Of a stretch of 64,000 nt of DNA, positions 2,903 to 24,540 are shown piece by piece; the first letter of the stretch is position 1, and every line of letters begins with the position of its first letter. The DNA is from Lepidodermella squamata (Eukaryota > Animalia > Gastrotricha). Below the pieces are notes generated by a model, which saw only the letters and a program-made list of their open reading frames with translations, searched no databases and was not told the DNA's origin. The stretch is from the NCBI GenBank assembly GCA_047495785.1, contig JBLDXI010000055.1, positions 620,001-684,000 on the forward strand, in the 5' to 3' direction. A program made the position numbers and the translations under genes.

Positions 2903-5759
2903 CTAAAACATGTATGCATCGCCGTCTTTGATATCTTCGAGAAATTCGCCAAAATTGAGTCCCTGCAACACAAGAAACTCAGAGAGTTAGATGATGACCT
3001 AATAGGAACATCATTTTACCTCGAGATCAATCTTGAACTGGCGTTTCGGGGAACATAGTGGAACGTCGCACGGTTCCCATTTTTTAAATGCGCTTTGCGT
3101 TAAACACCAAACTCCGTCGGCGTTGTCCTTTTCTGGATTTCTGAAATGAAAAAACCGTGAAATTCATAGTGGTACAATCATTAGAACATACCGGCAGTAA
3201 TTTGCCGCTGCTGTTACTGAATCATCCGGAAACAAGCTCGCCTCATTGTAGCCATGTTTATGTGGCACATTTGAGTCCCAACGTTGGCAAGGAATACCGG
3301 ACTTCGTGACATTGACTTTGCCTATGTACCCGCGGCCTGCCTTCGTAGTTCGGCATTTATCGGAGATGGGCTCCCGCGGAAGCGACTGAACTTGCTGATC
3401 GAGCTGTATTTGATTAAGAGACGCCAAAGAATTGGATGTTGGCGCACTTGAGTTGACGACCGGCAATCCAGTGGCTGACAATATAAGCAAAGCGAATTAA
3501 TTGAAAAAATCCTAAATATCTATGACTCACGACACATGGGTATTTCATTGCAAACGCCAGTTTTAGAATAACCCAAATCGGTATAGCACCAAGGTTTGCT
3601 TCGAGAATCCGGATTTCGGCACATCGATCCGGAAGCTTTCAGGGTGTCATCTGGGAAGCTCAAAGCACCCAAAGAACTCTGTCCAGCCCAAGCTGAACAC
3701 ATTCCGCTGTCCGAGACGGTTTGTGAGCCGATGTAGTCGTAACCAGTAGATGTGATCGAACATTCTTTATCATCAGACGAATTGATATTATCATGATTTT
3801 AGTAGGATTTCCATTATATTCATACCTTGATTTAGACTGGAAGCATTTGTACCAGCGCATGTCGCGTAAATGTTGAGCTTGAACCCAGACCGACCTCCTC
3901 CTCCCTGCTCGGCCGATGTGCTCGAGAAGATAACGAGAGCCTCGCCTTTGTCAGAGACTGCAACCCGACCTCCACTCTTGCCGCCAAGGCAAAATCTGCG
4001 GAAACAGTGAGTTGAAAATTGCATACACGCAAGACAAACACAAACCTATATCCAGGCGAAGAGACCTTGGCCATATCGGTTATAATTTCGACAAAATCGA
4101 TGCAGGTATCGGCTGTGTAAATTTTGATTTCTTAGAATACTTAGATGCTTCAGGTTCCACTTACAAATTTTAGCCGGCATGTTTGGTTGCTGCTCGAAAG
4201 CAAAAACAAGGCTTGTTTCGGTGTTGATTTTCCAGGAGCAAAATGACCCAGCGGCGTAGGTGTTCGGAAAATTCGGAGAGGTTATCGAGACAGTCGAGCA
4301 CTGCTGAATGACAAGCTCGCCGCCACAGTTTTGACTGCCAATTGAGGGCGCCACTGTTTGGCAGTAGTCTCCCCCTAAACCAGGCGGGCATCTGAGTGAA
4401 CGCGATAAGATATTAGCCTCAAAACTAATTGACTAAATCCTCGCTTTTACCTGCAAACAGCGCAATTTAGTGGATCTTGGTAGCCTCCATTTTGGCAAGC
4501 CTGAGGTAGCGTGATATTTGAACACATCCGCTCTGAATAAGACAAGACTTCGTAATTTTTGGCTTCAATAATTCTCGAAATTTACCAATGCAGTTGTAAT
4601 GAAAATTGATCCGCTTCACGTCGTTGAATGATAAGAATTCACGCTGACCAATCACAGTGAGGTGGCGGACATTTTTCGGCGTGATGACGCGTTTCTTGCC
4701 CATGTAATCAGTCGAGAAAGCCAGCGAATCTGGGCATAATTTTGATATAAAAAAGGATTTCCGCAAAAATATCAAGATCCACTCACCGTAATGCATTACA
4801 GAGGAATAATCGTAGCCAGTGCCGTAGTCGACGTCATCATCCTTGGATTCCAAGAGCGAATATTTAAAAGAAAAATAGTAAAAAACTCACCTTTGGAACT
4901 CTTGTGAAAGATGATTCCCCTAGCCCCGTTATCAGATTTCCATAGTTCACTGAGATGCTATGAATTTTGTTCGATAAGAAGCAGTATTATTGGCTCTCAA
5001 GGTAACTTACTATTCGTCGCGATCTGGGCGAGTATGCTCGTGCCACAAACCGAGGGCATGTCCGACTTCGTGGCTAGCAATACCGGGTGAAACACATCCC
5101 ATACCGAGGGTAACCGTTTGAGAGCTGAATGGCGACACCATGCCAACGAATGACCAGCAACCGAATCCCTTACTGAAAATCAGCCCTGCCTTTTTTCTCA
5201 GCTGTTTCACGGATGGATATTCGCGGAACGTGGCGCAGGTTGAGGCTTGCCAACGCTGAATTCCGCTTCGAATTATGGCTTTATCAGAATCAGCTGATTT
5301 CACAGAATGACCACAACTTATTACAATAAGGAAAAAGTTCAAATGACTTACAATGAGTTCCATCGAATGAGTAAGAAATAGGGAAGGACCATCTCGTCTC
5401 TTCTTTAGGATAGACACGTCTATCGAATCGCGGCTGCTCTTGACGAATTCCGAGTTCTGATTTAAGATTGTCGAGAATGCGTGTAGCCTGAGGAACTGTC
5501 CATCTGATGTCATTTTCGAGAAGTGACGTTTGTAACAGCTCGGCGCTCGGTTCCATAAATGCACGATTGATTCTGTGCTTGGCTCTGACCAGCGCTGTTA
5601 TTTCGTCTGTTATTTCGTTAACTTGAGCCTGCTCTTCATCGCTGATGGCAGAAACCTGGCGAAGAAATGCATTTAGTCCATAGTTTAGAAGCGCTGAAAT
5701 ATCCTTACTCCATGTGAGAGTACGGCAGAAAACGCGAATAAAAGCAATTTAATACTCAT
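2903..5759 (-). CDS. Astacin (M12A) metalloprotease A: signal peptide-prodomain-astacin-EGF-CUB-kringle-kringle, multi-exon
   Basis: Signal MSIKLLLFAFSAVLS; prodomain ENDIRWTVPQA; zinc motif HEVGHALGLWHEHTRPDRD; Met-turn YDYSSVMHY; CUB (CGGELV..ITSPNFPNTY..CSWKI); two kringles (CRNPDSRSKPWCY; GYIGKVNVTKSGIPCQRWD..NYCR); stop after GDAYMF. Confidence 0.9.
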
Positions 5760-7411: not shown

Positions 7412-10277
7412 TTAGGTAAGGCGTGAGCGCATTCGTTTGAACAAATCGCTCTCACGCTGGACTTTGATATTGGGCGATTTCGCCTCAATTTTTTCAGCGT
7501 CAAGGTAGCTTTTGATGATATCAGCGTCGATTTTACACCGCGGCACGTCGCAGATTTCCCATCGCATATTGGGATCCGTGGTGAAACACCATACACCCCG
7601 TCGAAAATTGGGGTCAGGATTCCTGAAAAATAATATTTGTATAAAACAATTTTGCCGCTTGAGCTGCAAACCTGCAATAGTTTTTCGCAAGTCGAACGGA
7701 TCCGTCAGGGAAAGCTGTATCGTTCTTGAAATAATTATGGATATGAGGATATCTGTCGGCCCAAGGTTGACACTGGCGGCCGTATCGCGTGGTTTGCAGG
7801 GTGCCGACGTATTCCGAACCGCGATCAGAAATACGGCAATCTGATTTAATAATGCTTTGAATTAACTGATTCAATTGCAAAATTTCTATGACTAACTTAG
7901 ATTCGGAATTTCAGGCTGCTGTTCAATCTTGTGCGTAGGAACGTCGGTCGATTCGGCTTGATCAAGGTCAAAGTTGAAATTGAAATTGTAATTTCGAGTC
8001 GTGGGCAGCGTAGTAGAGAGTAGTGGCTTCGGAGATTTTGAGACAGAGCTACTCTTCCAGTTGCTGGGTGGTAGGTTCTCTAAAACGCATATTCGTCCAG
8101 TAAATTTCAATGAATTGTAAAGAGTAGTTTTACCGCATTTAGGAATAGCCGCGCAATAATCGGGATTCGATGAGTCCAAATCGGTGTAACACCACGGCAA
8201 TGCGAGAGAATTGGGATTGCGGCAAAAATTTCCAGATTCGAGCAAGCTTTCATCAGGCAAACTGATTGGTGCTACATCGTCTTGATTCGCCCAAGGCAGG
8301 CAAATTTTCCCCGAATCGGCTACGCCATAAGACCCTTGATAGTCATAGCCACTCTTGCCGATTTTGCACTCTTTCAAACCAACAGCTGTGAGATAATCAA
8401 TTTTGGAAAATATAATTTTTTTTACCAAACGTGAATTCAGATGCCGATAAGTTTCCGCATGTTGCGAAAATGTTTAATTTAAAGCCATTGAAGCCTCCAT
8501 TTCCCAGCCTTGCGTTGAAATAAACGAAGGCGCTTCCTGCGTTAATCGAAGCAACTCGGCCCGCAGATTTTCCACATCCACAGAACCTGTTTCCAGGTTC
8601 ATCTATACGGCTGATATTGGAGCGAATTTCGACGTAGTCGATGCACGCCTCGAGTTTCGAGCACGGCAAATCTGGTTGTTGATCGAATCCAAAAATCAGA
8701 CCTCGAGCACTTGTCTGAAAATTAACTGTTAACACTTTGAAATGGTTTCACCGCGCCGAAATAAACCTCAACTAGCCATGAGCAGGTAGTACCAGCTGAG
8801 TATTTTCCAGGATACCCCGGGGAAGTGATGAAAGCAGATGAGCAAGGTGAAATTCTGACGATACCCCCGCAATTAGATGTAGAAGTTTTGGCCAGAATTT
8901 CGCAAAAATCGCCGGTAACTCCGAACGGACACCGGCATTTCGCGCAATTTTTTGGGTCTTGATACCCACCGTTCAGACAAGATCGTTTCAGAGGCCGTTT
9001 CGCGCAACTCCAGTTTAAGCAGTCGTAGAGTAAATTTACTCGTTTTATGTCGAGGAAAGATAACTCGCTGCGTTGACCGATGGTTGCTTGCAGGTATTGA
9101 TCAACTGTCTCAATCGCCCGTCTCTTGGATCTTGAAGATTTTAATGATTTTTAAGTCGGAAAACAGAGGTTAGGCTTACATTTCGTTCCCAGGTAGCTGT
9201 AAAAAAATTAAAAAATTAAACTTTTACGACACGTTTCAAAAAAATACTATTGAAGCGTAATGCATGATGGATGTTGGGTCGTATGGCGTATTCAAGGTTA
9301 CTGCCCATGGTTCCTTGTAAAATGCGTATTTGTCCCTAAAAATTGAAGCCTGAAAAATGAATCGAATTTGTCTTAGTCCACGTACAGTCCGACGTTAGCG
9401 AAATTGACGCGAATGCTGCAAAAATGTTCTTGATTTTGGATAGACTTTTTATTGGGAAAATGCTCACTAGCTGTCTCTGTCCGGACGGTTGTGTTCGTGG
9501 CTAAGTCCAAGGGCATGGCCAATTTCGTGGGAAGCTATTCCTGGCTGTTGATAATCACAGATAATTACGATACTTTCAAGTTTCAAGAGTCTCACCGTAA
9601 TGCAGTCACGACCTAGAACAACTTTTTGCGGTATTTCGCCTGTTGATCCAATATTGGTGAAACATCTATTACAAATGATTAGTTCCCTAAAAATTCGATT
9701 AGATAAAAATTGCTTACCCTGATCCTTTTACTATCAACAAATATGGCTGCATTCCGATTGATAAATCGTCAGGATATTCTATGAACTGGACACAGGTAGC
9801 AGCAGCCCACCACTCGATCCCTTGCCTTATGAGCGCCTTCTCGTCATCGGCTGAAAAAATCACTGCTTAAACGCAAAATTAATCGAGTCTTTGAATCTAC
9901 TATATTTCGTAGCTCCTGGTTCAGAACTTGTGAACGTGTAAATAATTGGTAGATTCCATTTATTAACCAAGGATGATTTATCGTCTCGCTTCACCGAAGG
10001 TTCGCCATTCAACTCCGCTTTGATCGAGGAAAGAAGCCACTCTGCTTGAGGTAAAGTAAAATTCACGTCGTTTATCGTTTCTGCGGAAATCTGTTGGAGG
10101 AAAACAGTTGGAACTTCTGTATTGGTTTTAGACTTGAAATTATACCCCGGTTTCCCCGACACGATAATGCTGAACCAATAGATCATTGATCTGGTTTAAA
10201 ATACGCTCCACGTCGAGTGTTGAAGCAAAGTTGTAGCAAACGAAAATAGAAAAAAACAACAAAAGTTTGGCAAGCAT
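7412..10277 (-). CDS. Astacin metalloprotease B: signal-prodomain-astacin-EGF-CUB-kringle-S/T linker-kringle, multi-exon
   Basis: Signal [19 protein letters not shown]; prodomain [14 protein letters not shown]; [19 protein letters not shown] (about 9470-9540); YDPTSIMHY; [15 protein letters not shown]; CUB; kringles [13 protein letters not shown] and [21 protein letters not shown]. Confidence 0.9.
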
Positions 10278-17387: not shown

Positions 17388-17542
17388 GTTGGTAGAAGTG
17401 TCCTCTCAGACGGCTCAGAGGGCACCCCACCTCCAACCTCTAACCCTAAACCTTACCCTAACCCTAAAACTAACCATAAATCTAACCTTATTAGAGCGAT
17501 CCCTCCGATAGCGGTGCCCTCTGAGACGGCACTTCTAACAAC
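17388..17542. mobile_element. Small MITE-like foldback element with internal degenerate telomere-like (CCCTAA) repeats
   Basis: Left arm gttggtagaagtg..ctcagagggcacc (17388 to ~17426) is the near reverse complement of right arm ggtgccctctgagacggcacttctaacaac (17513-17542). Core ctaaccctaaaccttaccctaaccctaaaactaaccataaatctaacc. Confidence 0.6.
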
Positions 17543-17990: not shown

Positions 17991-20900
17991 ATGGAACCCA
18001 AAAGCAAACTTTGCGAAGCCAATCCTCGTGAAAGAGACTCGTGGTTTCTCTCTGGGGGACTATTTGCGCATCGTTCCTGTTGCATGAATATAATCTCATA
18101 CTGCCTTGAATTCATTTTATGGTTTTCTTGACATTTTCACGCCAGCTTTCGATGGATTTATCGGCTTTTAGACTTGATCATGGATATTTCTTGCATTTCG
18201 TCTGCCCAATAGCTGCAATAGTTAGTTAGATGTTATAGCTTATTTCAGATGGGCCTAATCATAATGAAATGGCGGGAAGGTAATCAATTAAGCGATATCT
18301 TTACTTTGAAGATAAAAGGACTCTCAAGGGACTATATTGGTGAATTTTCTCGCGTCTTACTCCCTAAATGTTTTGCATTCCTGTGTAATAAGATCGCCTT
18401 GTTTCAGTATTATAGCCAAATCGAGCCGAATTTGTAACTTTTATTCACATTGATTACCCTGAGATTTCGCCGTGCTGTTTTGTTTTCCGTTTCATCTTAT
18501 CTGCTGTTATCACAAATGCTGTTTTAATAGGGTAGTTATTTGAACGACTGATTGGGAGTGCATTTTAAAGAATAAAACTGGAACCAACAGTCGAGTTTTC
18601 TCCCAACCCCAATCCTCCTGCAGGATCTGGGGAAGACAAGCGAACTCCAGAATATTTGTCTGAACTTTTGCGAGACAAAAAGCTTGTCGAACTACTGAAA
18701 CACACGCTACCATTTTGTCACGTCGAACGGCTTCTGGAAGATGGTTTGTCATAATGTTAATTCATTTTCTAATTTCCAATGCCAATTTCACAACTTTCAG
18801 AGATAACCAAAGTTCGCGAAAATCTCTTTCATCTCAACGGTGTAACTTCACAACCTCTTGATTTGCCCGCTCCGGATGGCGAGTCACAAGTGCATCAGGA
18901 AAAAGTTATGGTTCCAGTCGATCAATATCCCGAGGTAATTTTTTTGCTTTACATTGTTTTTTAAGATGACATTCTTTAATTTATTGCAGTACAACTTCGT
19001 CGGCCGAATTTTAGGCCCTCGCGGTTTGACAGCCAAGCAGCTAGAGCAAGACACAGGTTGCAAAATCATGGTCCGGGGTCGCGGATCAATGCGTGATAAG
19101 AGAAAAGTACGATATATGCATTATACTCATATCACATTGTTCTACATATATGATATTTTCCACAGGAGGAACAGATGCGTGGAAGACCCAACTGGGAACA
19201 CCTCGAAGAAAGCCTTCATGTCCTTATTCAGTGTGAGGATACGCCTAATCGCGCTAAAGTTAAGCTCCAACGCGCGCATGAACTGGTGAAACAACTTCTT
19301 ATTCCAGCGGTAAGCTTCTGAGTTCTTTTAGCATTTACAATACATACGGTGGACAATTTAGTCATAAGTCTACTAGAATCCGGGGTTTGTTATTGACGTT
19401 GTTTGTGTACGTTGTCAAGTGTATGTAATATGTGCCGGCCTATCGTATCTTAATTTTTAGTCAACTGTTTGTAATTTCCATTGTTGTTTTACAAGCCATC
19501 GCGCTAAGCGCATGGTTTCACTCAGTTAATTTTTAAGAAATATATATAAAATGTACATATACACACACAAACACCATAGGAGGAGGGAAAAGACCACTTG
19601 AAGAAAATGCAATTGGCCATTTTGGCTATTGAAAACGACAAATTCCGACCAGCCGGTGGTAAAACCAGCCCTCGAAGTGTGATGGGAACGCCATTAATCA
19701 CGAGTACAAATCAAGCGGGTCCTTCTGCGCCCTCGCCGCTTCCCTCGGGAGCAACACAACAGGCATTCTTCGGAGCTAGCAGCTCTCTTGCATCTCATCC
19801 TGCTGGAGCTTTTGTCTTTCCCTCTGGAGTTGCAGCAGCATCTACTCATTCGCTTTCTTTACCCTGTACGTGTAAAAGTTACTTGAAACTAAACACAGTT
19901 GGCTTCGCTTTTAAACACCAAACCCCAACCATTCGTTGCCCGTAAACCTCCGGCTGCTTCATACTGCCTTTCACACAAACACTGAGACAAAGTTAACACG
20001 GGTTCAGGGTTCATGTTATTCTGAATTAATTTCGTGGTGTATAGCTGGTGATGGATTTAACTCTTGTTTCAGGCTTATCAAGATAACTTCAGGAATCAGC
20101 AGTTGCGCTGGCTGTCTATTTTGAAAAACTTAGAACGTGGCCCGGTAACTGCACAGCCCGCGCCGTTGAATTGTATGCTAGTGCCTAATGTTGCTGTCGT
20201 GAACGCAGCGCCGCTTTCCATTCCTTTCTCTACGACCCCGCAAATCGGTTTTATGACTCCCACCTCGAGTGATGGCTCCCCTTGCACAGCGAACGACTCG
20301 CCGGGCTTGATGAAAGCTGGTTTTCATGATAATGTCCCAATTAAGAAGTGGTCGAATTATGGCGATTTAGTTATGCGGAATAGCGTTGAAGGTTAAATAT
20401 GGCGGAGTATCACTTGAATTTTCATTAACATCATCTAATAACTAACGCCGCACAAAATAATGTATGGTCGGACATTTTTTATTCAAGGTTAAAGGTGTTT
20501 CAATGTTATTTATATGTTAACATTATAATTTAACACTACTTCTAATTTAACATACTCACAAACGCACTTCTATGTTTTGCACTTTCTGTTTTTAACCATG
20601 CACAGCCGGAGGGCGAGGATGACCTCAAGAAAAAACAACTGATGGAGCTCGCAATTTTAAACGGAACCTATCGTGATTCGAAACCTCTTACCGTCGGTGG
20701 TTGTAACACCGCGAGCGCGACAACGATGCTAGCCAGTCCGGTTAGCGCGTTGTCGCCGCCACCAGCCGTCTCGTATCCTACCGTCCAACTGTCGTCAGCG
20801 CGTAAGTGCCGGTTTTCCCCTCGAAAAAATTGCCAGCTCCTCCCCGCCGATAACCCCCTGCACCTATAACCTCTTGTATTAGAAAATCGCAATTGTCTTA

Positions 20901-21661
20901 GATTTGTCCAATTTTCTAGCTCTCGCAAATTCGGGCAATTTCACGCTGGCAAATGTTCAACAGCAAGCTAATGCCGCTAATATTCTACAACTGGGTCGCC
21001 TTCCGCTTCGAATGCCAAGCACTTCTCCGTTCAGTCTCATCCAGTCGGCTGGCGTGACCGCCAGTTCACCGACGATTGATCTGTCGAGTTTTCTCAACGC
21101 GCAACAAGCCGCTGCGCTACAGCAACAACTGCTGATTCCGACTCAGCAGCAAGAGCAGGTCCGTTGCTGGACACAAATACGTTCGTTATTTCTCTACTAA
21201 TAAGACTTGTAATTTTCATAGGCTCATCAATTGACGATAGCTGCTGCTGATTTGCCGCAAATCTCAAATGCGCTCATTCAGGCGGCTCAGCAACAGCAGC
21301 ACCAGCATGCTCAGCTGCAAAATTTGATGGCCCAACAGCAGCAACAACAGGGGCTGCTGGCCCTGGCTCATCAGCAACAGGTTGTGGCTGCGGGCCAAAC
21401 TATGGAAGATCTTCACGCTGCATCTCAGCAATCAGCCGCAGGTTTGTAGACCCGAATATTTTGTTCTGACTAACTCGAAAATTATCGAGGAGCGAACTAT
21501 TTCTAACTTTTGATTAACGGTGTTTGGGACATTTCTTCATGTGTGCCGTGTTGTTTTGTGGTGCAGGGCCCGTCAGAGTGAGTCTGAAATCGGCAATGCT
21601 CGGTGTTGGTGGCGGCGGCGTTGCTGGTTCTGCGCGGCCTCATCCTTACGCGCGGTCGTAA
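17991..21661 (+). CDS. STAR/Quaking-family KH RNA-binding protein (QKI/HOW/ASD-2/GLD-1-like) with three alternative QUA2 exons
   Basis: QUA1 [25 protein letters not shown]; [38 protein letters not shown]; canonical QUA2 [23 protein letters not shown] (20606-20801); Q-rich tail; C-terminal [13 protein letters not shown]. The start exon (17991 vs the ATG near 18269) is uncertain. Confidence 0.92.
19393..19433 (+). promoter_or_regulatory. Putative intronic docking site for mutually exclusive QUA2 exon selection
   Basis: tgtttgtgt (19400-19408) and gtgtatgt (19419-19426) are complementary to sequences upstream of each of the three QUA2 exons. Confidence 0.55.
19580..19865 (+). CDS. Alternative QUA2 exon A of the STAR gene
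   Basis: catag|GAG acceptor; [24 protein letters not shown] aligns to QUA2; ends T|gtacgt in phase 1 (286 nt). Confidence 0.75.
20073..20391 (+). CDS. Alternative QUA2 exon B of the STAR gene (most diverged; may instead be a terminal exon ending at TAA 20396)
   Basis: tttcag|GCT acceptor; [22 protein letters not shown] aligns to QUA2; G|gttaaa phase-1 donor (319 nt). Confidence 0.62.
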
Positions 21662-24540
21662 CGGTGAAATACGTCTCGACTTGTGATGTATTTTTTCAAA
21701 AAGCCATAGATTTTAACGGTTTGTTTGACGAATTTCAACTTTCAATTTTTCTATTAATAATAATAATGCGCAATAACTTTCTTGAAATCAATTTCCCGAT
21801 TAGTCTTTCTGAAAACATTTTTAACAAGAAAATATCACTCGTTTTTTTCTTAACAATAACCAACAAAAACACGGCGATAAAAGTTACATTTCGAATGCTC
21901 ATCAATTTCGGTGCATGGCGGCTTAAGCAGGGGGAGGCAAAATTTACATTGAAAATCAATAGATCATTTGTTGAAGGCACCCCTCACTTTAGTCGAACCC
22001 CGGTAGAGCCTATTTAACTGCGCAGATTGAGTTGACTTATAATAATAACTTATAATTTATAATTGTCTTGCATTTTTATTACTAATTAGTATAACAACCA
22101 CAGTAACAACCAGCACAACGAAGGATGATGATGTCCAACTACTATACTATCAACCAACATGCTACTACTGACTGTTAAAATCCGTAAAACTTCACGTTGC
22201 ACTCGTTGCCGCTGCTCTATCATGATGTGACTTGTATCTATACCTTGAGGCTGTTAAATAATCCAATCTAAACACGTCAGCGCGACCTATCCAGTGTTTC
22301 ACGCCGCAACTTACGCTGATTTGTTTGTTTGGTTGCCGCTGTTGCTGCTGCTGATTATGATGATGCTGCTGCTGAATTTGTTGCTGGCTAAAATTTACGT
22401 TTAACGCTGTATTTAATATTGTCCAAACATCAAAACCTCTGGTAGTTCCAAACTTTACTTCCAATGTCAACATCAACTTCTATCCTCCTGTACTTACTGA
22501 ATGCACTTCCATTTTAATATGCTAGGCAAACAACTTTTGAGAACAAAATTTTTGACAATTTCTTCGCTAATAATGTGCCATTGTTGATTAGCGAAATAGA
22601 GATTACCTACTGCTATCTATACTATATATTTAATTCTGATAAATCAACGAAAATTTAACACGGAGCAAAATAATCAACGAATTGTAACCAAACTAATTTC
22701 CGATAGATGGATATAACACAAACAAATGTTCTTCCTTTTCTAGCCGTACTTTGGCGTGCGTTCCTTTTAGAACCAACGGATATTTTTTTTCGCTAAATTT
22801 AACAACGCGCCAATTTTTCAAATTTTCACGAATCTTCCAATTTACATTTGATTTGTAAAAGAACCTGCTGATGCTGAAGATTTTATATTAGTAATTTAGA
22901 TTGCTTTTGGCTTCTTTCGCAAACTCTGCTCTTCCATTCTCATCGAACGTTATTTACAGGCATCGATGGAGAACAAAAAAATATTATAATAATTTTTCTT
23001 CGGGGAAAAACTGCTGGTTGCATTTGAGAAATTGTACAGAAATATTATATACTTGAATATATATCTATATTATTGATGAAAAATGTTTGTGTGCCATCAA
23101 ATTTATTATTACTTGATGCCTTGATCCTAAAAGAGGAAAAATATTAGCCAATATATACACTTTCTTCAGAGAACTGCTGATATGAAGAATTAGGCTGAGA
23201 AATCTTTATTCTTGCAATACGCGACTTCTTCAAGTATAATTATATGTGTACATATATTCGAAGTGTGTCAAAAATTGTTATGATTTTTGGGTTTTTGTTT
23301 CTTTCTGCGTCTGCATCGCACGGGTAAAAATATTTGTTGTATAATCGCGTCACGCGCGACTAGATTTTTTTATTTTGGTTTCTATCAAAAACGAGAGGTA
23401 AAAATCAACACGAATTTTCTTGTGTAAATCGGTAAGCTATTCTTATAAATCACTACTACTCATCTGGTGCGGTATTCTTCTCCCACGTTCTTTTCTGCCA
23501 GCTCTATTTCAGATGATTCGACCTCATCTCTCGAGTGAAATCTGAGAAAATATTACATACATACCTTGGCGAATTTTGAGAGGCTTGTTTCTTAGTTCAA
23601 TTTTTACGATCCTCGCTGCTATCCTCCTGTGCGATGGACCATTTTACAAGGAGCAGGAACGCATCTGCACCGCTGATTTTGGTGCGAAAATGCCCAAGTA
23701 TGATAGCGTTTCGTGTTGTTTTAAGACCAAGCGCAGCGCGATGATTTGTAATCACTAGCGCGGGCCCAATTTTTGCTGTTAGCGCCGACTTTCCACGTGG
23801 TAAACGCGCGATCTTTCGCTCTTTTCTGTTATTATTTTCAGCGCTACTATAAATATATCGTTTTTAGTATACTCGGTTTGTTACACCGAATGCGAATCTC
23901 GTTCTTGCATCTCGCCGGGCTGCTTTAGACATAATATTTTTCAGTAGTTTACGCGTCGGCCCTGGTACATCGAAACTTGTAGTTGCAGTAGTAAAATAAT
24001 AACCGCAGTCGTCGTGATGATGGTATTTTGTGCCGAGAAAACGAGAAAGGAAATAACAAGGCTCGTTAGCCTTACATACGCGCGCTACGTGTACGATACG
24101 TGGAGAAAATTATAGAGTAAAGCAAACAAAAGAGATATTATGCTATGTATATATTCATCGCCCTCATCATCGATCATGTGCTTCAGAAGACAACAGGAAT
24201 GAATGATCTGAACATCCCTTCTCACTGCATTTCCTACATCTGCTCGCTCTCTCATCAACGTAATTATAAAGATAAACATACAAAAATTACCGCAACTTTG
24301 CTATTATCCTTATTTACTACCTTCTATGTATACAATGCTAGTGTTAAAAATGTAAGAAAGAATAAATAATATCGCAAGTATTTCTCTTTTTTTTCTCTCT
24401 CTCTCGTTCTTCTTCATCCTATCTCTCTTTATCTATCTGGCGGGACTTGTTTTCTGCGTTTTCATCACAGTTGATGATGACAGTGTGACGTCTATGATTA
24501 TGATTAAATGCATTTTAAATTGAAAAAAGAATAAAAGGCG
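21662..24540 (+). other. Probable long 3' UTR of the STAR gene
   Basis: About 2.9 kb of AT-rich sequence with no credible ORF; AATAAA at ~24361 and ~24529. Confidence 0.45.

Follow-up and report, generated by a model that had tools for sequence, protein, structure and literature searches.

In a 64,000-nucleotide stretch of the gastrotrich Lepidodermella squamata (contig JBLDXI010000055.1, positions 620,001 to 684,000; hereafter the window, within which all positions are numbered), a gene on the plus strand is recognisable from its sequence as a member of the RNA-binding STAR family, i.e., of the Quaking/HOW/ASD-2 type (QKI subfamily). The exon encoding the QUA2 helix of this gene has very probably been triplicated in tandem, with the copies (referred to as exons A, B, and C) being spliced in a mutually exclusive manner. 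Three mutually exclusive exons at the QUA2 position had been proposed in an initial annotation of this stretch, and this structural claim is now borne out by six RNA junctions and by conservation of the arrangement in a relative with saturated synonymous divergence. STAR proteins (QKI, HOW, GLD-1, SF1) are single-domain, sequence-specific RNA binders whose known isoforms vary outside the domain that binds RNA; according to structural work, QUA2 determines the 5′ portion of the recognised motif and much of the affinity.

Gene layout and inclusion of exons A, B, and C

RNA was represented by one public run (X1, 2015), the assembled spliced contigs of which match the window at 99% or more. All six junctions expected from inclusion of a single variant exon were present in these contigs, each at the predicted GT..AG sites: the donor of the last KH exon was joined to A (19309>19580, depth 16.3), B (19309>20073, depth 13.7), or C (19309>20606, depth 40.3), and each of these was joined to the same downstream exon (19865>20920, 20391>20920, and 20801>20920, with depths of 20.1, 15.1, and 40.3, respectively). 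Among the X1 junctions listed, which were the best-supported ones and comprised all but three weaker joints, none linked A to B, A to C, or B to C. Moreover, the depths sum to 70.3 into and 75.5 out of the variant exons, next to 60.9 and 74.8 for the flanking constitutive junctions, as exactly-one inclusion predicts (contig depth being a rough measure). By the same measure, C accounts for roughly 55% and A and B for about 20–25% each in the X1 sample. The shorter side of each branch junction comprised 28–32 letters, as a 31-letter word graph leaves at a fork; the reads therefore contain the spanning words, though a long molecule covering the variant region was not seen. The single-inclusion junctions for which the initial annotation had suggested looking were thus all recovered, and its own caveat that A and B might receive no spliced reads is contradicted by the X1 data.

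The features of the gene are as follows, with a slash marking an exon border:

18531–18743, plus strand: exon 1, 5′ untranslated region (5′UTR) and start of the QUA1 dimerisation region; earliest exon in RNA
18801–18934, plus strand: exon 2, end of QUA1, linker, and start of KH; from RNA junctions 18743>18801 and 18934>18990 and from translation
18990–19106, plus strand: exon 3, KH domain with its GxxG part; Pfam PF22675, E 5e-12; RNA junction 19106>19166
19166–19309, plus strand: exon 4, last KH exon, ending in phase 0 (...LLIPA/gtaag); donor common to A, B, and C
19580–19865, plus strand: exon A, 286 nucleotides (nt), tag/GAG...CCT/gtacgt; QUA2 helix and 71-residue tail
20073–20391, plus strand: exon B, 319 nt, cag/GCT...AAG/gttaaa; diverged helix with core QDxFRxQQ[LM]RWLSILK and 82-residue tail
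20392–20605, plus strand: B–C intron, with a YUAAY cluster (STAR-site or branch-point-like)
20606–20801, plus strand: exon C, 196 nt, cag/CCG...GCG C/gtaagt; canonical QUA2 and 41-residue tail
20920–21158, plus strand: first common exon, taking A, B, or C in phase 1
21222–21441, plus strand: common Gln-rich exon; RNA junctions 21158>21222 and 21441>21567
21567–21661, plus strand: last coding exon, stop at 21659–61; C-terminus ...RPHPYARS (...RQHPYART in the relative L003, introduced below)

The exons are all flanked by AG/GT sites. A, B, and C share a phase-0 start and a phase-1 end, and since the lengths of all three are 3n+1, only single inclusion preserves the frame. Frame computation indeed left the frame open to the stop at 21659–61 with A, B, or C singly, and yielded early stops with zero, two, or three variant exons together. 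The coordinates, peptides, phases, and lengths that the initial annotation had given for the three exons were all correct upon re-computation, and the computed frames confirmed its arithmetic that one exon stays in frame while two shift it.

The KH domain is of the KHDC4/BBP type (maxi-KH), with PF22675 matching exon 3 at E 5.4e-12 and exon 4 at E 1.6e-3, and exon 4 was matched by 551 library proteins at E ≤ 0.001. In alignments with homologues, the peptide of exon 1 falls at their QUA1 position (E 2e-6, local set), and the orthologous exon 1 in L003–L005 bears PF16544 (STAR_dimer), marked weak. The exon end after ...LL[VI]PA is the same as in animal homologues generally. At the other end of the protein, the C-terminal ...RPHPYARS resembles the PY-type nuclear signal of QKI-5.

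Exon 1 lacks an in-frame ATG, and in the RNA contig an in-frame TAA at 18566–68 is followed by AGA ATA AAA CTG GAA. The CTG at 18578–80 (with A at –3 and G at +4) looks like the start codon, and apparently a conserved CUG start, because no ATG is found in L003 (3500–3560) either and the peptide is conserved from K-L-E onward; L003 shares only AAAACTGGAAC there. The RNA contig starts at 18529/31 behind 23 letters (TCTGCGAATTTGATTTGTGTCTA) not present in the window, with an AG acceptor at 18529–30, and these extra 5′ letters are either a spliced leader or a far upstream exon. In the 3′UTR, an optional GT..AG intron spans 21718–22088 (RNA junction 21717>22089, depth 62), which unspliced contigs also cover. 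Upstream of the gene, a degenerate short CCCTAA/CCTAA-like repeat is found at 17420–17490, where DNA contigs from run X2 pile up to a depth of 818; this is therefore a repeated element.

Conservation in relatives and identity of the variant exons

Relatives were reached via the KH exon (through two near-identical short proteins in a large collection) and a further cluster member, leading to metagenome contigs. L002 is a Logan genomic contig that ends just after exon A, while L003–L006 represent one species and are 97.7–99.3% alike. Compared with the window, the exon DNA of L002 and L003–L006 is about 70–82% identical and synonymous sites are saturated (proportion of synonymous differences, pS, of 0.83–1.0). 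In L002, exon A measures 292 nt (3n+1) with its AG/GT sites kept (pS 0.83–0.88), and its first 24 codons differ from those of the window by 11 synonymous and zero nonsynonymous changes. In L003–L006, A, B, and C are present in the same order with splice sites and phases kept, and with lengths of 235, 295, and 196 nt, respectively, all 3n+1; the 235 nt of exon A are obtained after removal of an inferred 60-nt intron (L003 4613–4672), of a size typical for the gene.

Over the first 24 codons, comparison with L003 gave zero nonsynonymous and 8 synonymous changes for A, and zero and 16 for C. For B, the proportion of nonsynonymous differences (pN) was 0.22 with pS saturated, and the core QDxFRxQQ[LM]RWLSILK was intact. 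The tail of B evolves fast (pN 0.52), with the frame open and an island GFMTP.SS.GSP..NDSP retained; among L003–L006, only two sites of B vary and the encoded protein is the same. Exon A is conserved far past its helix: 50 of its first 55 residues are invariant over three lineages, with GGKTSPRS and PSAPSP among them. In every variant exon, constraint is strongest on the helix. This comparison, which the initial annotation had called for, thus reveals a helix of A free of amino-acid change and a faster-changing B that keeps its helix core, while the loss of reading frames that it had named as a sign of decayed duplicates is contradicted by A and B being open and 3n+1 in L003–L006. Taken together, these data indicate that the three-exon arrangement is old and under selection. 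Introns elsewhere in the gene show turnover: the one separating exons 2 and 3 in the window (18935–18989) is missing from L001, L002, and L003, and that after the first common exon (21159–21221) is missing from L003.

As to whether the three exons encode QUA2, exon C matches the QUA2 helix of QKI (4jvh residues 179–202, E 1.3e-6) and also those of GLD-1 and SF1. For exon A, the best match across the whole PDB was the same QKI 4jvh stretch, in register but weak (E about 1). Scanning the window in six frames with a profile of 31 canonical QUA2 helices yielded two matches only, with C scoring 60.6 bits and A scoring 20.8 bits (E 1.7e-5). The alignment of A to C scored 56, a score reached by none of 20,000 shuffles, while B aligned to C in the expected register with a linker one residue shorter, beating about 99.9% of composition-preserving shuffles (P about 0.001); for B of the L003-type relative, the corresponding value was P 0.006. 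These similarities (weaker for B vs. C) support the exons being homologous by duplication. AlphaFold placed a helix at residues 3–18 of A and 2–18 of B with disorder beyond, in predictions on single exons with almost no alignment depth and a predicted local distance difference test score (pLDDT) of about 65. Exon A can therefore be called a QUA2 exon from its sequence. Pfam gave no match on A, B, or C taken singly, a search of the ESM Atlas with exon B returned noise-level matches only, and metagenome scans with the A and B peptides yielded no confirmed relative; a search of the large protein collection with A or B alone gave no match either, although the length window of that search makes this null little telling.

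RNA contacts, exon choice, and competing explanations

The structure of GLD-1 indicates which residues matter for RNA binding (PMC4081071). The first uracil sits in a pocket formed by the linker G308-T309-D310, with D310 bridging to KH; K313 makes two base-specific hydrogen bonds to cytosine (K313A costing 65-fold); phosphates are neutralised by R314 and R328; L317 is stacked against a base; L320 is packed against the proline of GxxG (L320S costing 26-fold); and A321 lines the adenine pocket (PMC4081071). Equivalents in QKI are G185, D187, K190, and Q193, the latter (GLD-1 Q316) contacting uracil (PMC5626755). These residues were mapped onto A, B, and C by eye and by alignments. Exon C has every listed contact residue. 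Exon A keeps D310, K313, R314, L317, L320, A321, and R328 (i.e., 7/7 GLD-1/QKI contact or interface residues) as well as Q316, and differs from C on other faces of the helix (M>A, E>I, I/L>E, G>D, T>K, and Y>F). In exon B, whose alignment contains a gap of one residue, D, Q, L/M, L, and I are retained, but K313>R, R314>N/H, and A321>S are found, the linker glycine is lacking, and the Arg328 position is not kept. K313>R is the state of SF1 and A321>S that of Sam68 (PMC4081071).

Since all known RNA-contact and KH-interface residues are kept, the A form probably reads the same YUAAY-type motif as C; a switch in RNA binding appears unlikely for A, which may instead differ in QUA2 docking or through its Ser/Thr-Pro-rich tail. 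Conversely, because several contact residues are replaced and the KH-QUA2 linker is shortened, B is the most likely altered form, for which a different affinity or 5′ base preference is plausible. Binding to ACUAAY/YUAAY as a dimer is suggested by residue conservation. The swap is not confined to QUA2, since each exon adds 40–80 further residues that are partly conserved.

YUAAY motifs are themselves enriched near the variant exons. The B–C intron contains 8 of them vs. 2.5 expected in the window (P 0.003), and 5 vs. 1.6 expected in L003 (5199–5299; P 0.02), and L003 shows enrichment also in its A–B intron (4730–4903), i.e., before B. The motif is absent from the KH–A intron of both relatives, and no enrichment was seen before A or behind C. 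Moreover, the donor of exon B (G/GTTAA) is weak, with an in-frame TAA directly after the junction, and is conserved in L003 (window 20392–20396; L003 5199–5203). This suggests that exon choice may be regulated, and perhaps self-regulated by the protein, via the YUAAY clusters before B and C and the weak donor of B. Were the B–C intron retained, the protein would end one residue after B and lack the C-terminal PY motif, making a short form possible. Also within this intron, X1 contigs contain two joints between opposite strands (20398/20477 and 20461/20574, depth 7–9), for which an artefact, a hairpin, or antisense RNA could be responsible. With regard to docking/selector pairing, the inverted repeats were short and AT-rich and had different partners, and the best inter-intron duplexes were no better than shuffles in the window and L003 (z –1.4 to +2.0), in a crude test that weak or long-range pairings could escape.

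In the mechanism we propose, the QUA2 exon of a Quaking/HOW/ASD-2-type gene was triplicated in tandem, and the KH exon donor joins A, B, or C, each of which joins the same downstream exon, as the RNA junctions show. Skipping or double inclusion leads to premature stops, so that the 3n+1 lengths are enough to make the exons exclusive in the protein, and mis-spliced forms would be expected to be degraded. The three products, of about 466, 477, and 436 residues, would be nuclear and have identical QUA1 and KH but differ in the QUA2 helix and the next 40–80 residues. The C protein would be the canonical form, the A protein would share its YUAAY-type motif and differ in helix surface and tail, and the B protein would be likeliest to bind RNA with an altered affinity or 5′ base preference. 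A more far-reaching and tentative version, on which we would not yet rely, is that a splicing regulator diversifies its own RNA-reading head, with B as a neofunctionalised QUA2 (its 5′ half of the motif changed or its affinity lowered) and with the protein's own YUAAY binding feeding back on the choice of head. If true, one gene would run two or three distinct target programmes.

A number of observations weigh against mutually exclusive QUA2 exons. The RNA stems from a single run in the form of contigs, no single molecule spans the whole variant region, and rare double inclusion may occur beyond the best-supported X1 junctions listed. Exon B was picked up neither by the QUA2 profile (in six frames of the 64-kb window) nor by the PDB search, and is assigned to QUA2 solely from where it lies, its phase, the helix predicted for it, and an alignment that is weak (P about 0.001). 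In addition, exon A of L003 stays open only with its inferred internal intron, and the residue of B aligned to R328 is Arg in the window, Ser in X1 RNA (20136 C>A), and Cys in L003.

The alternative to which we give the most credence, although less than an even chance, accepts the splicing pattern and places its purpose in the tails: all forms would bind essentially the same motif, and the exons would exchange a disordered segment (with Ser/Thr-Pro sites, partner motifs, and spacing to the Gln-rich region), differences in the helix being tolerated or tuning its docking onto KH. This would accommodate the retention of all contact residues in A, the conservation of A well past the helix (50/55 residues), the kept island GFMTP.SS.GSP..NDSP in B, and the fact that AlphaFold orders only the helix. 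It is at odds, however, with B altering both the adenine-pocket Ala and the Lys with two base-specific hydrogen bonds (65-fold for K313A), and with the helix being the most constrained part of every exon. It is unlikely that B also serves as an alternative last exon, i.e., that the B–C intron is retained or cleaved so that a stop follows one codon after B (...G, TAA). The resulting short protein would lack both the Gln-rich region and the PY signal at the C-terminus, and would be comparable to the cytoplasmic QKI-6/7 or HOW(S). The weak donor G/GTTAA with its in-frame TAA, kept in the window and L003, and the RNA contigs within the B–C intron (depth 7–9) would fit such a role, whereas the B>common junction at depth 15 makes B at least mainly internal, no AATAAA is found in the B–C intron, and the intron contigs with their odd opposite-strand joints may be pre-mRNA or artefacts.

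Two further explanations bear on whether A and B are functional or real. Decaying duplicates, or poison exons that lower the output of canonical C, could account for C being best conserved and having the deepest junctions, and for the fast evolution of B outside its helix (pN 0.52). Nevertheless, with A or B as the sole variant exon the frame runs through to the normal stop, open frames, splice sites, and 3n+1 lengths have been preserved across saturated divergence despite changes in length (286/292/235 for A and 319/295 for B), and the helix of A is without amino-acid change, by which this highly improbable explanation is already largely refuted. Even less credible is that the junctions are assembly artefacts or derive from paralogous genes elsewhere in the genome. 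The data are indeed contig-only with short flanks at the branches, but six joints fall exactly on predicted GT..AG sites in contigs that match at 99% or more, their depths add up to the constitutive level, and the same exons recur in one locus on independent metagenome contigs. Tandem triplication with mutually exclusive splicing thus stays our preferred explanation.

Relation to known STAR genes and exon clusters

The gene shares the order QUA1-KH-QUA2 with QKI, HOW, ASD-2, and GLD-1. Its STAR domain is 60–67% identical to nematode ASD-2-like and collembolan proteins, the QUA2 of exon C is almost identical to that of QKI, and its C-terminus bears an ...HPY... motif. HOW isoforms L and S differ at the C-terminus. 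The same holds for QKI isoforms 5, 6, and 7 (PMC9786888), while in GLD-1 a KH loop varies by a tripeptide (PMC4081071). An exchange of QUA2 is not described for the QKI, HOW, and GLD-1 isoforms, in contrast to the three alternative QUA2 exons of the window gene, and no description of alternative QUA2 exons was found in the literature searched. Sam68/T-STAR and SF1, in turn, are separate genes with their own KH, whereas in the window gene a variant helix is joined to the same KH by splicing; the substitutions of B nevertheless mimic the natural family variation seen in Sam68 and SF1. The gene offers a natural helix-swap in which three versions of QUA2 have been kept on one KH for very long, which makes it a suitable case for gauging to what extent a STAR protein can be retuned through QUA2 alone.

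Among the 150 best library representatives, a canonical QUA2 was present in all that continue past KH (the others reading into the intron), and no A-like or B-like QUA2 was found. In one library protein, the vertebrate-looking QKI model P0145, the KH exon end runs directly into ...ALAFSLAATAQ..., with the QUA2 exon skipped, which could reflect either genuine exon skipping or faulty annotation. Scanning of eight orthologous loci with profiles revealed one QUA2 per KH in Adineta, Heterodera, Orchesella, and three other loci. The QKI-like gene of the annelid Dimorphilus gyrociliatus (L008, GCA_904063045.1), however, has two tandem QUA2 exons, i.e., Qa (7766–7889, 124 nt) and Qb (8119–8236, 118 nt), which follow the same KH exon end in phase 0 and are both 3n+1, so that either alone is in frame and both or neither shift the frame. 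Qb is canonical and unannotated, whereas Qa has lost the equivalent of Arg328 (NGTYG) and is the sole one used in the public model P0117. The design is therefore not confined to the window lineage, and the uniqueness implied by the initial annotation was overstated. Compared with the window, Dimorphilus has two copies rather than three, both near-canonical with short tails and without a B-like form, and they are known there from gene sequence alone; what is special to the window lineage is the three-exon form with its strongly diverged B. Judging from the annelid, comparable exon pairs may be going unnoticed in gene annotation elsewhere, and the device may be ancient in spiralian-type animals.

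As in Dscam1 (exons 4, 6, and 9), myosin heavy chain, and C. elegans let-2 (exons 9 and 10), the variant exons are related, in tandem, of identical phases, conserved, and included one per mRNA. In contrast to Dscam-type clusters, no docking-site/selector pairing is detectable here, and the 3n+1 lengths secure exclusivity at the protein level. C. elegans ASD-2 itself reportedly controls a mutually exclusive exon pair. What the window gene swaps is the helix with which a splicing regulator reads RNA, and the regulator would thus be diversified by mutually exclusive splicing of its own recognition element.

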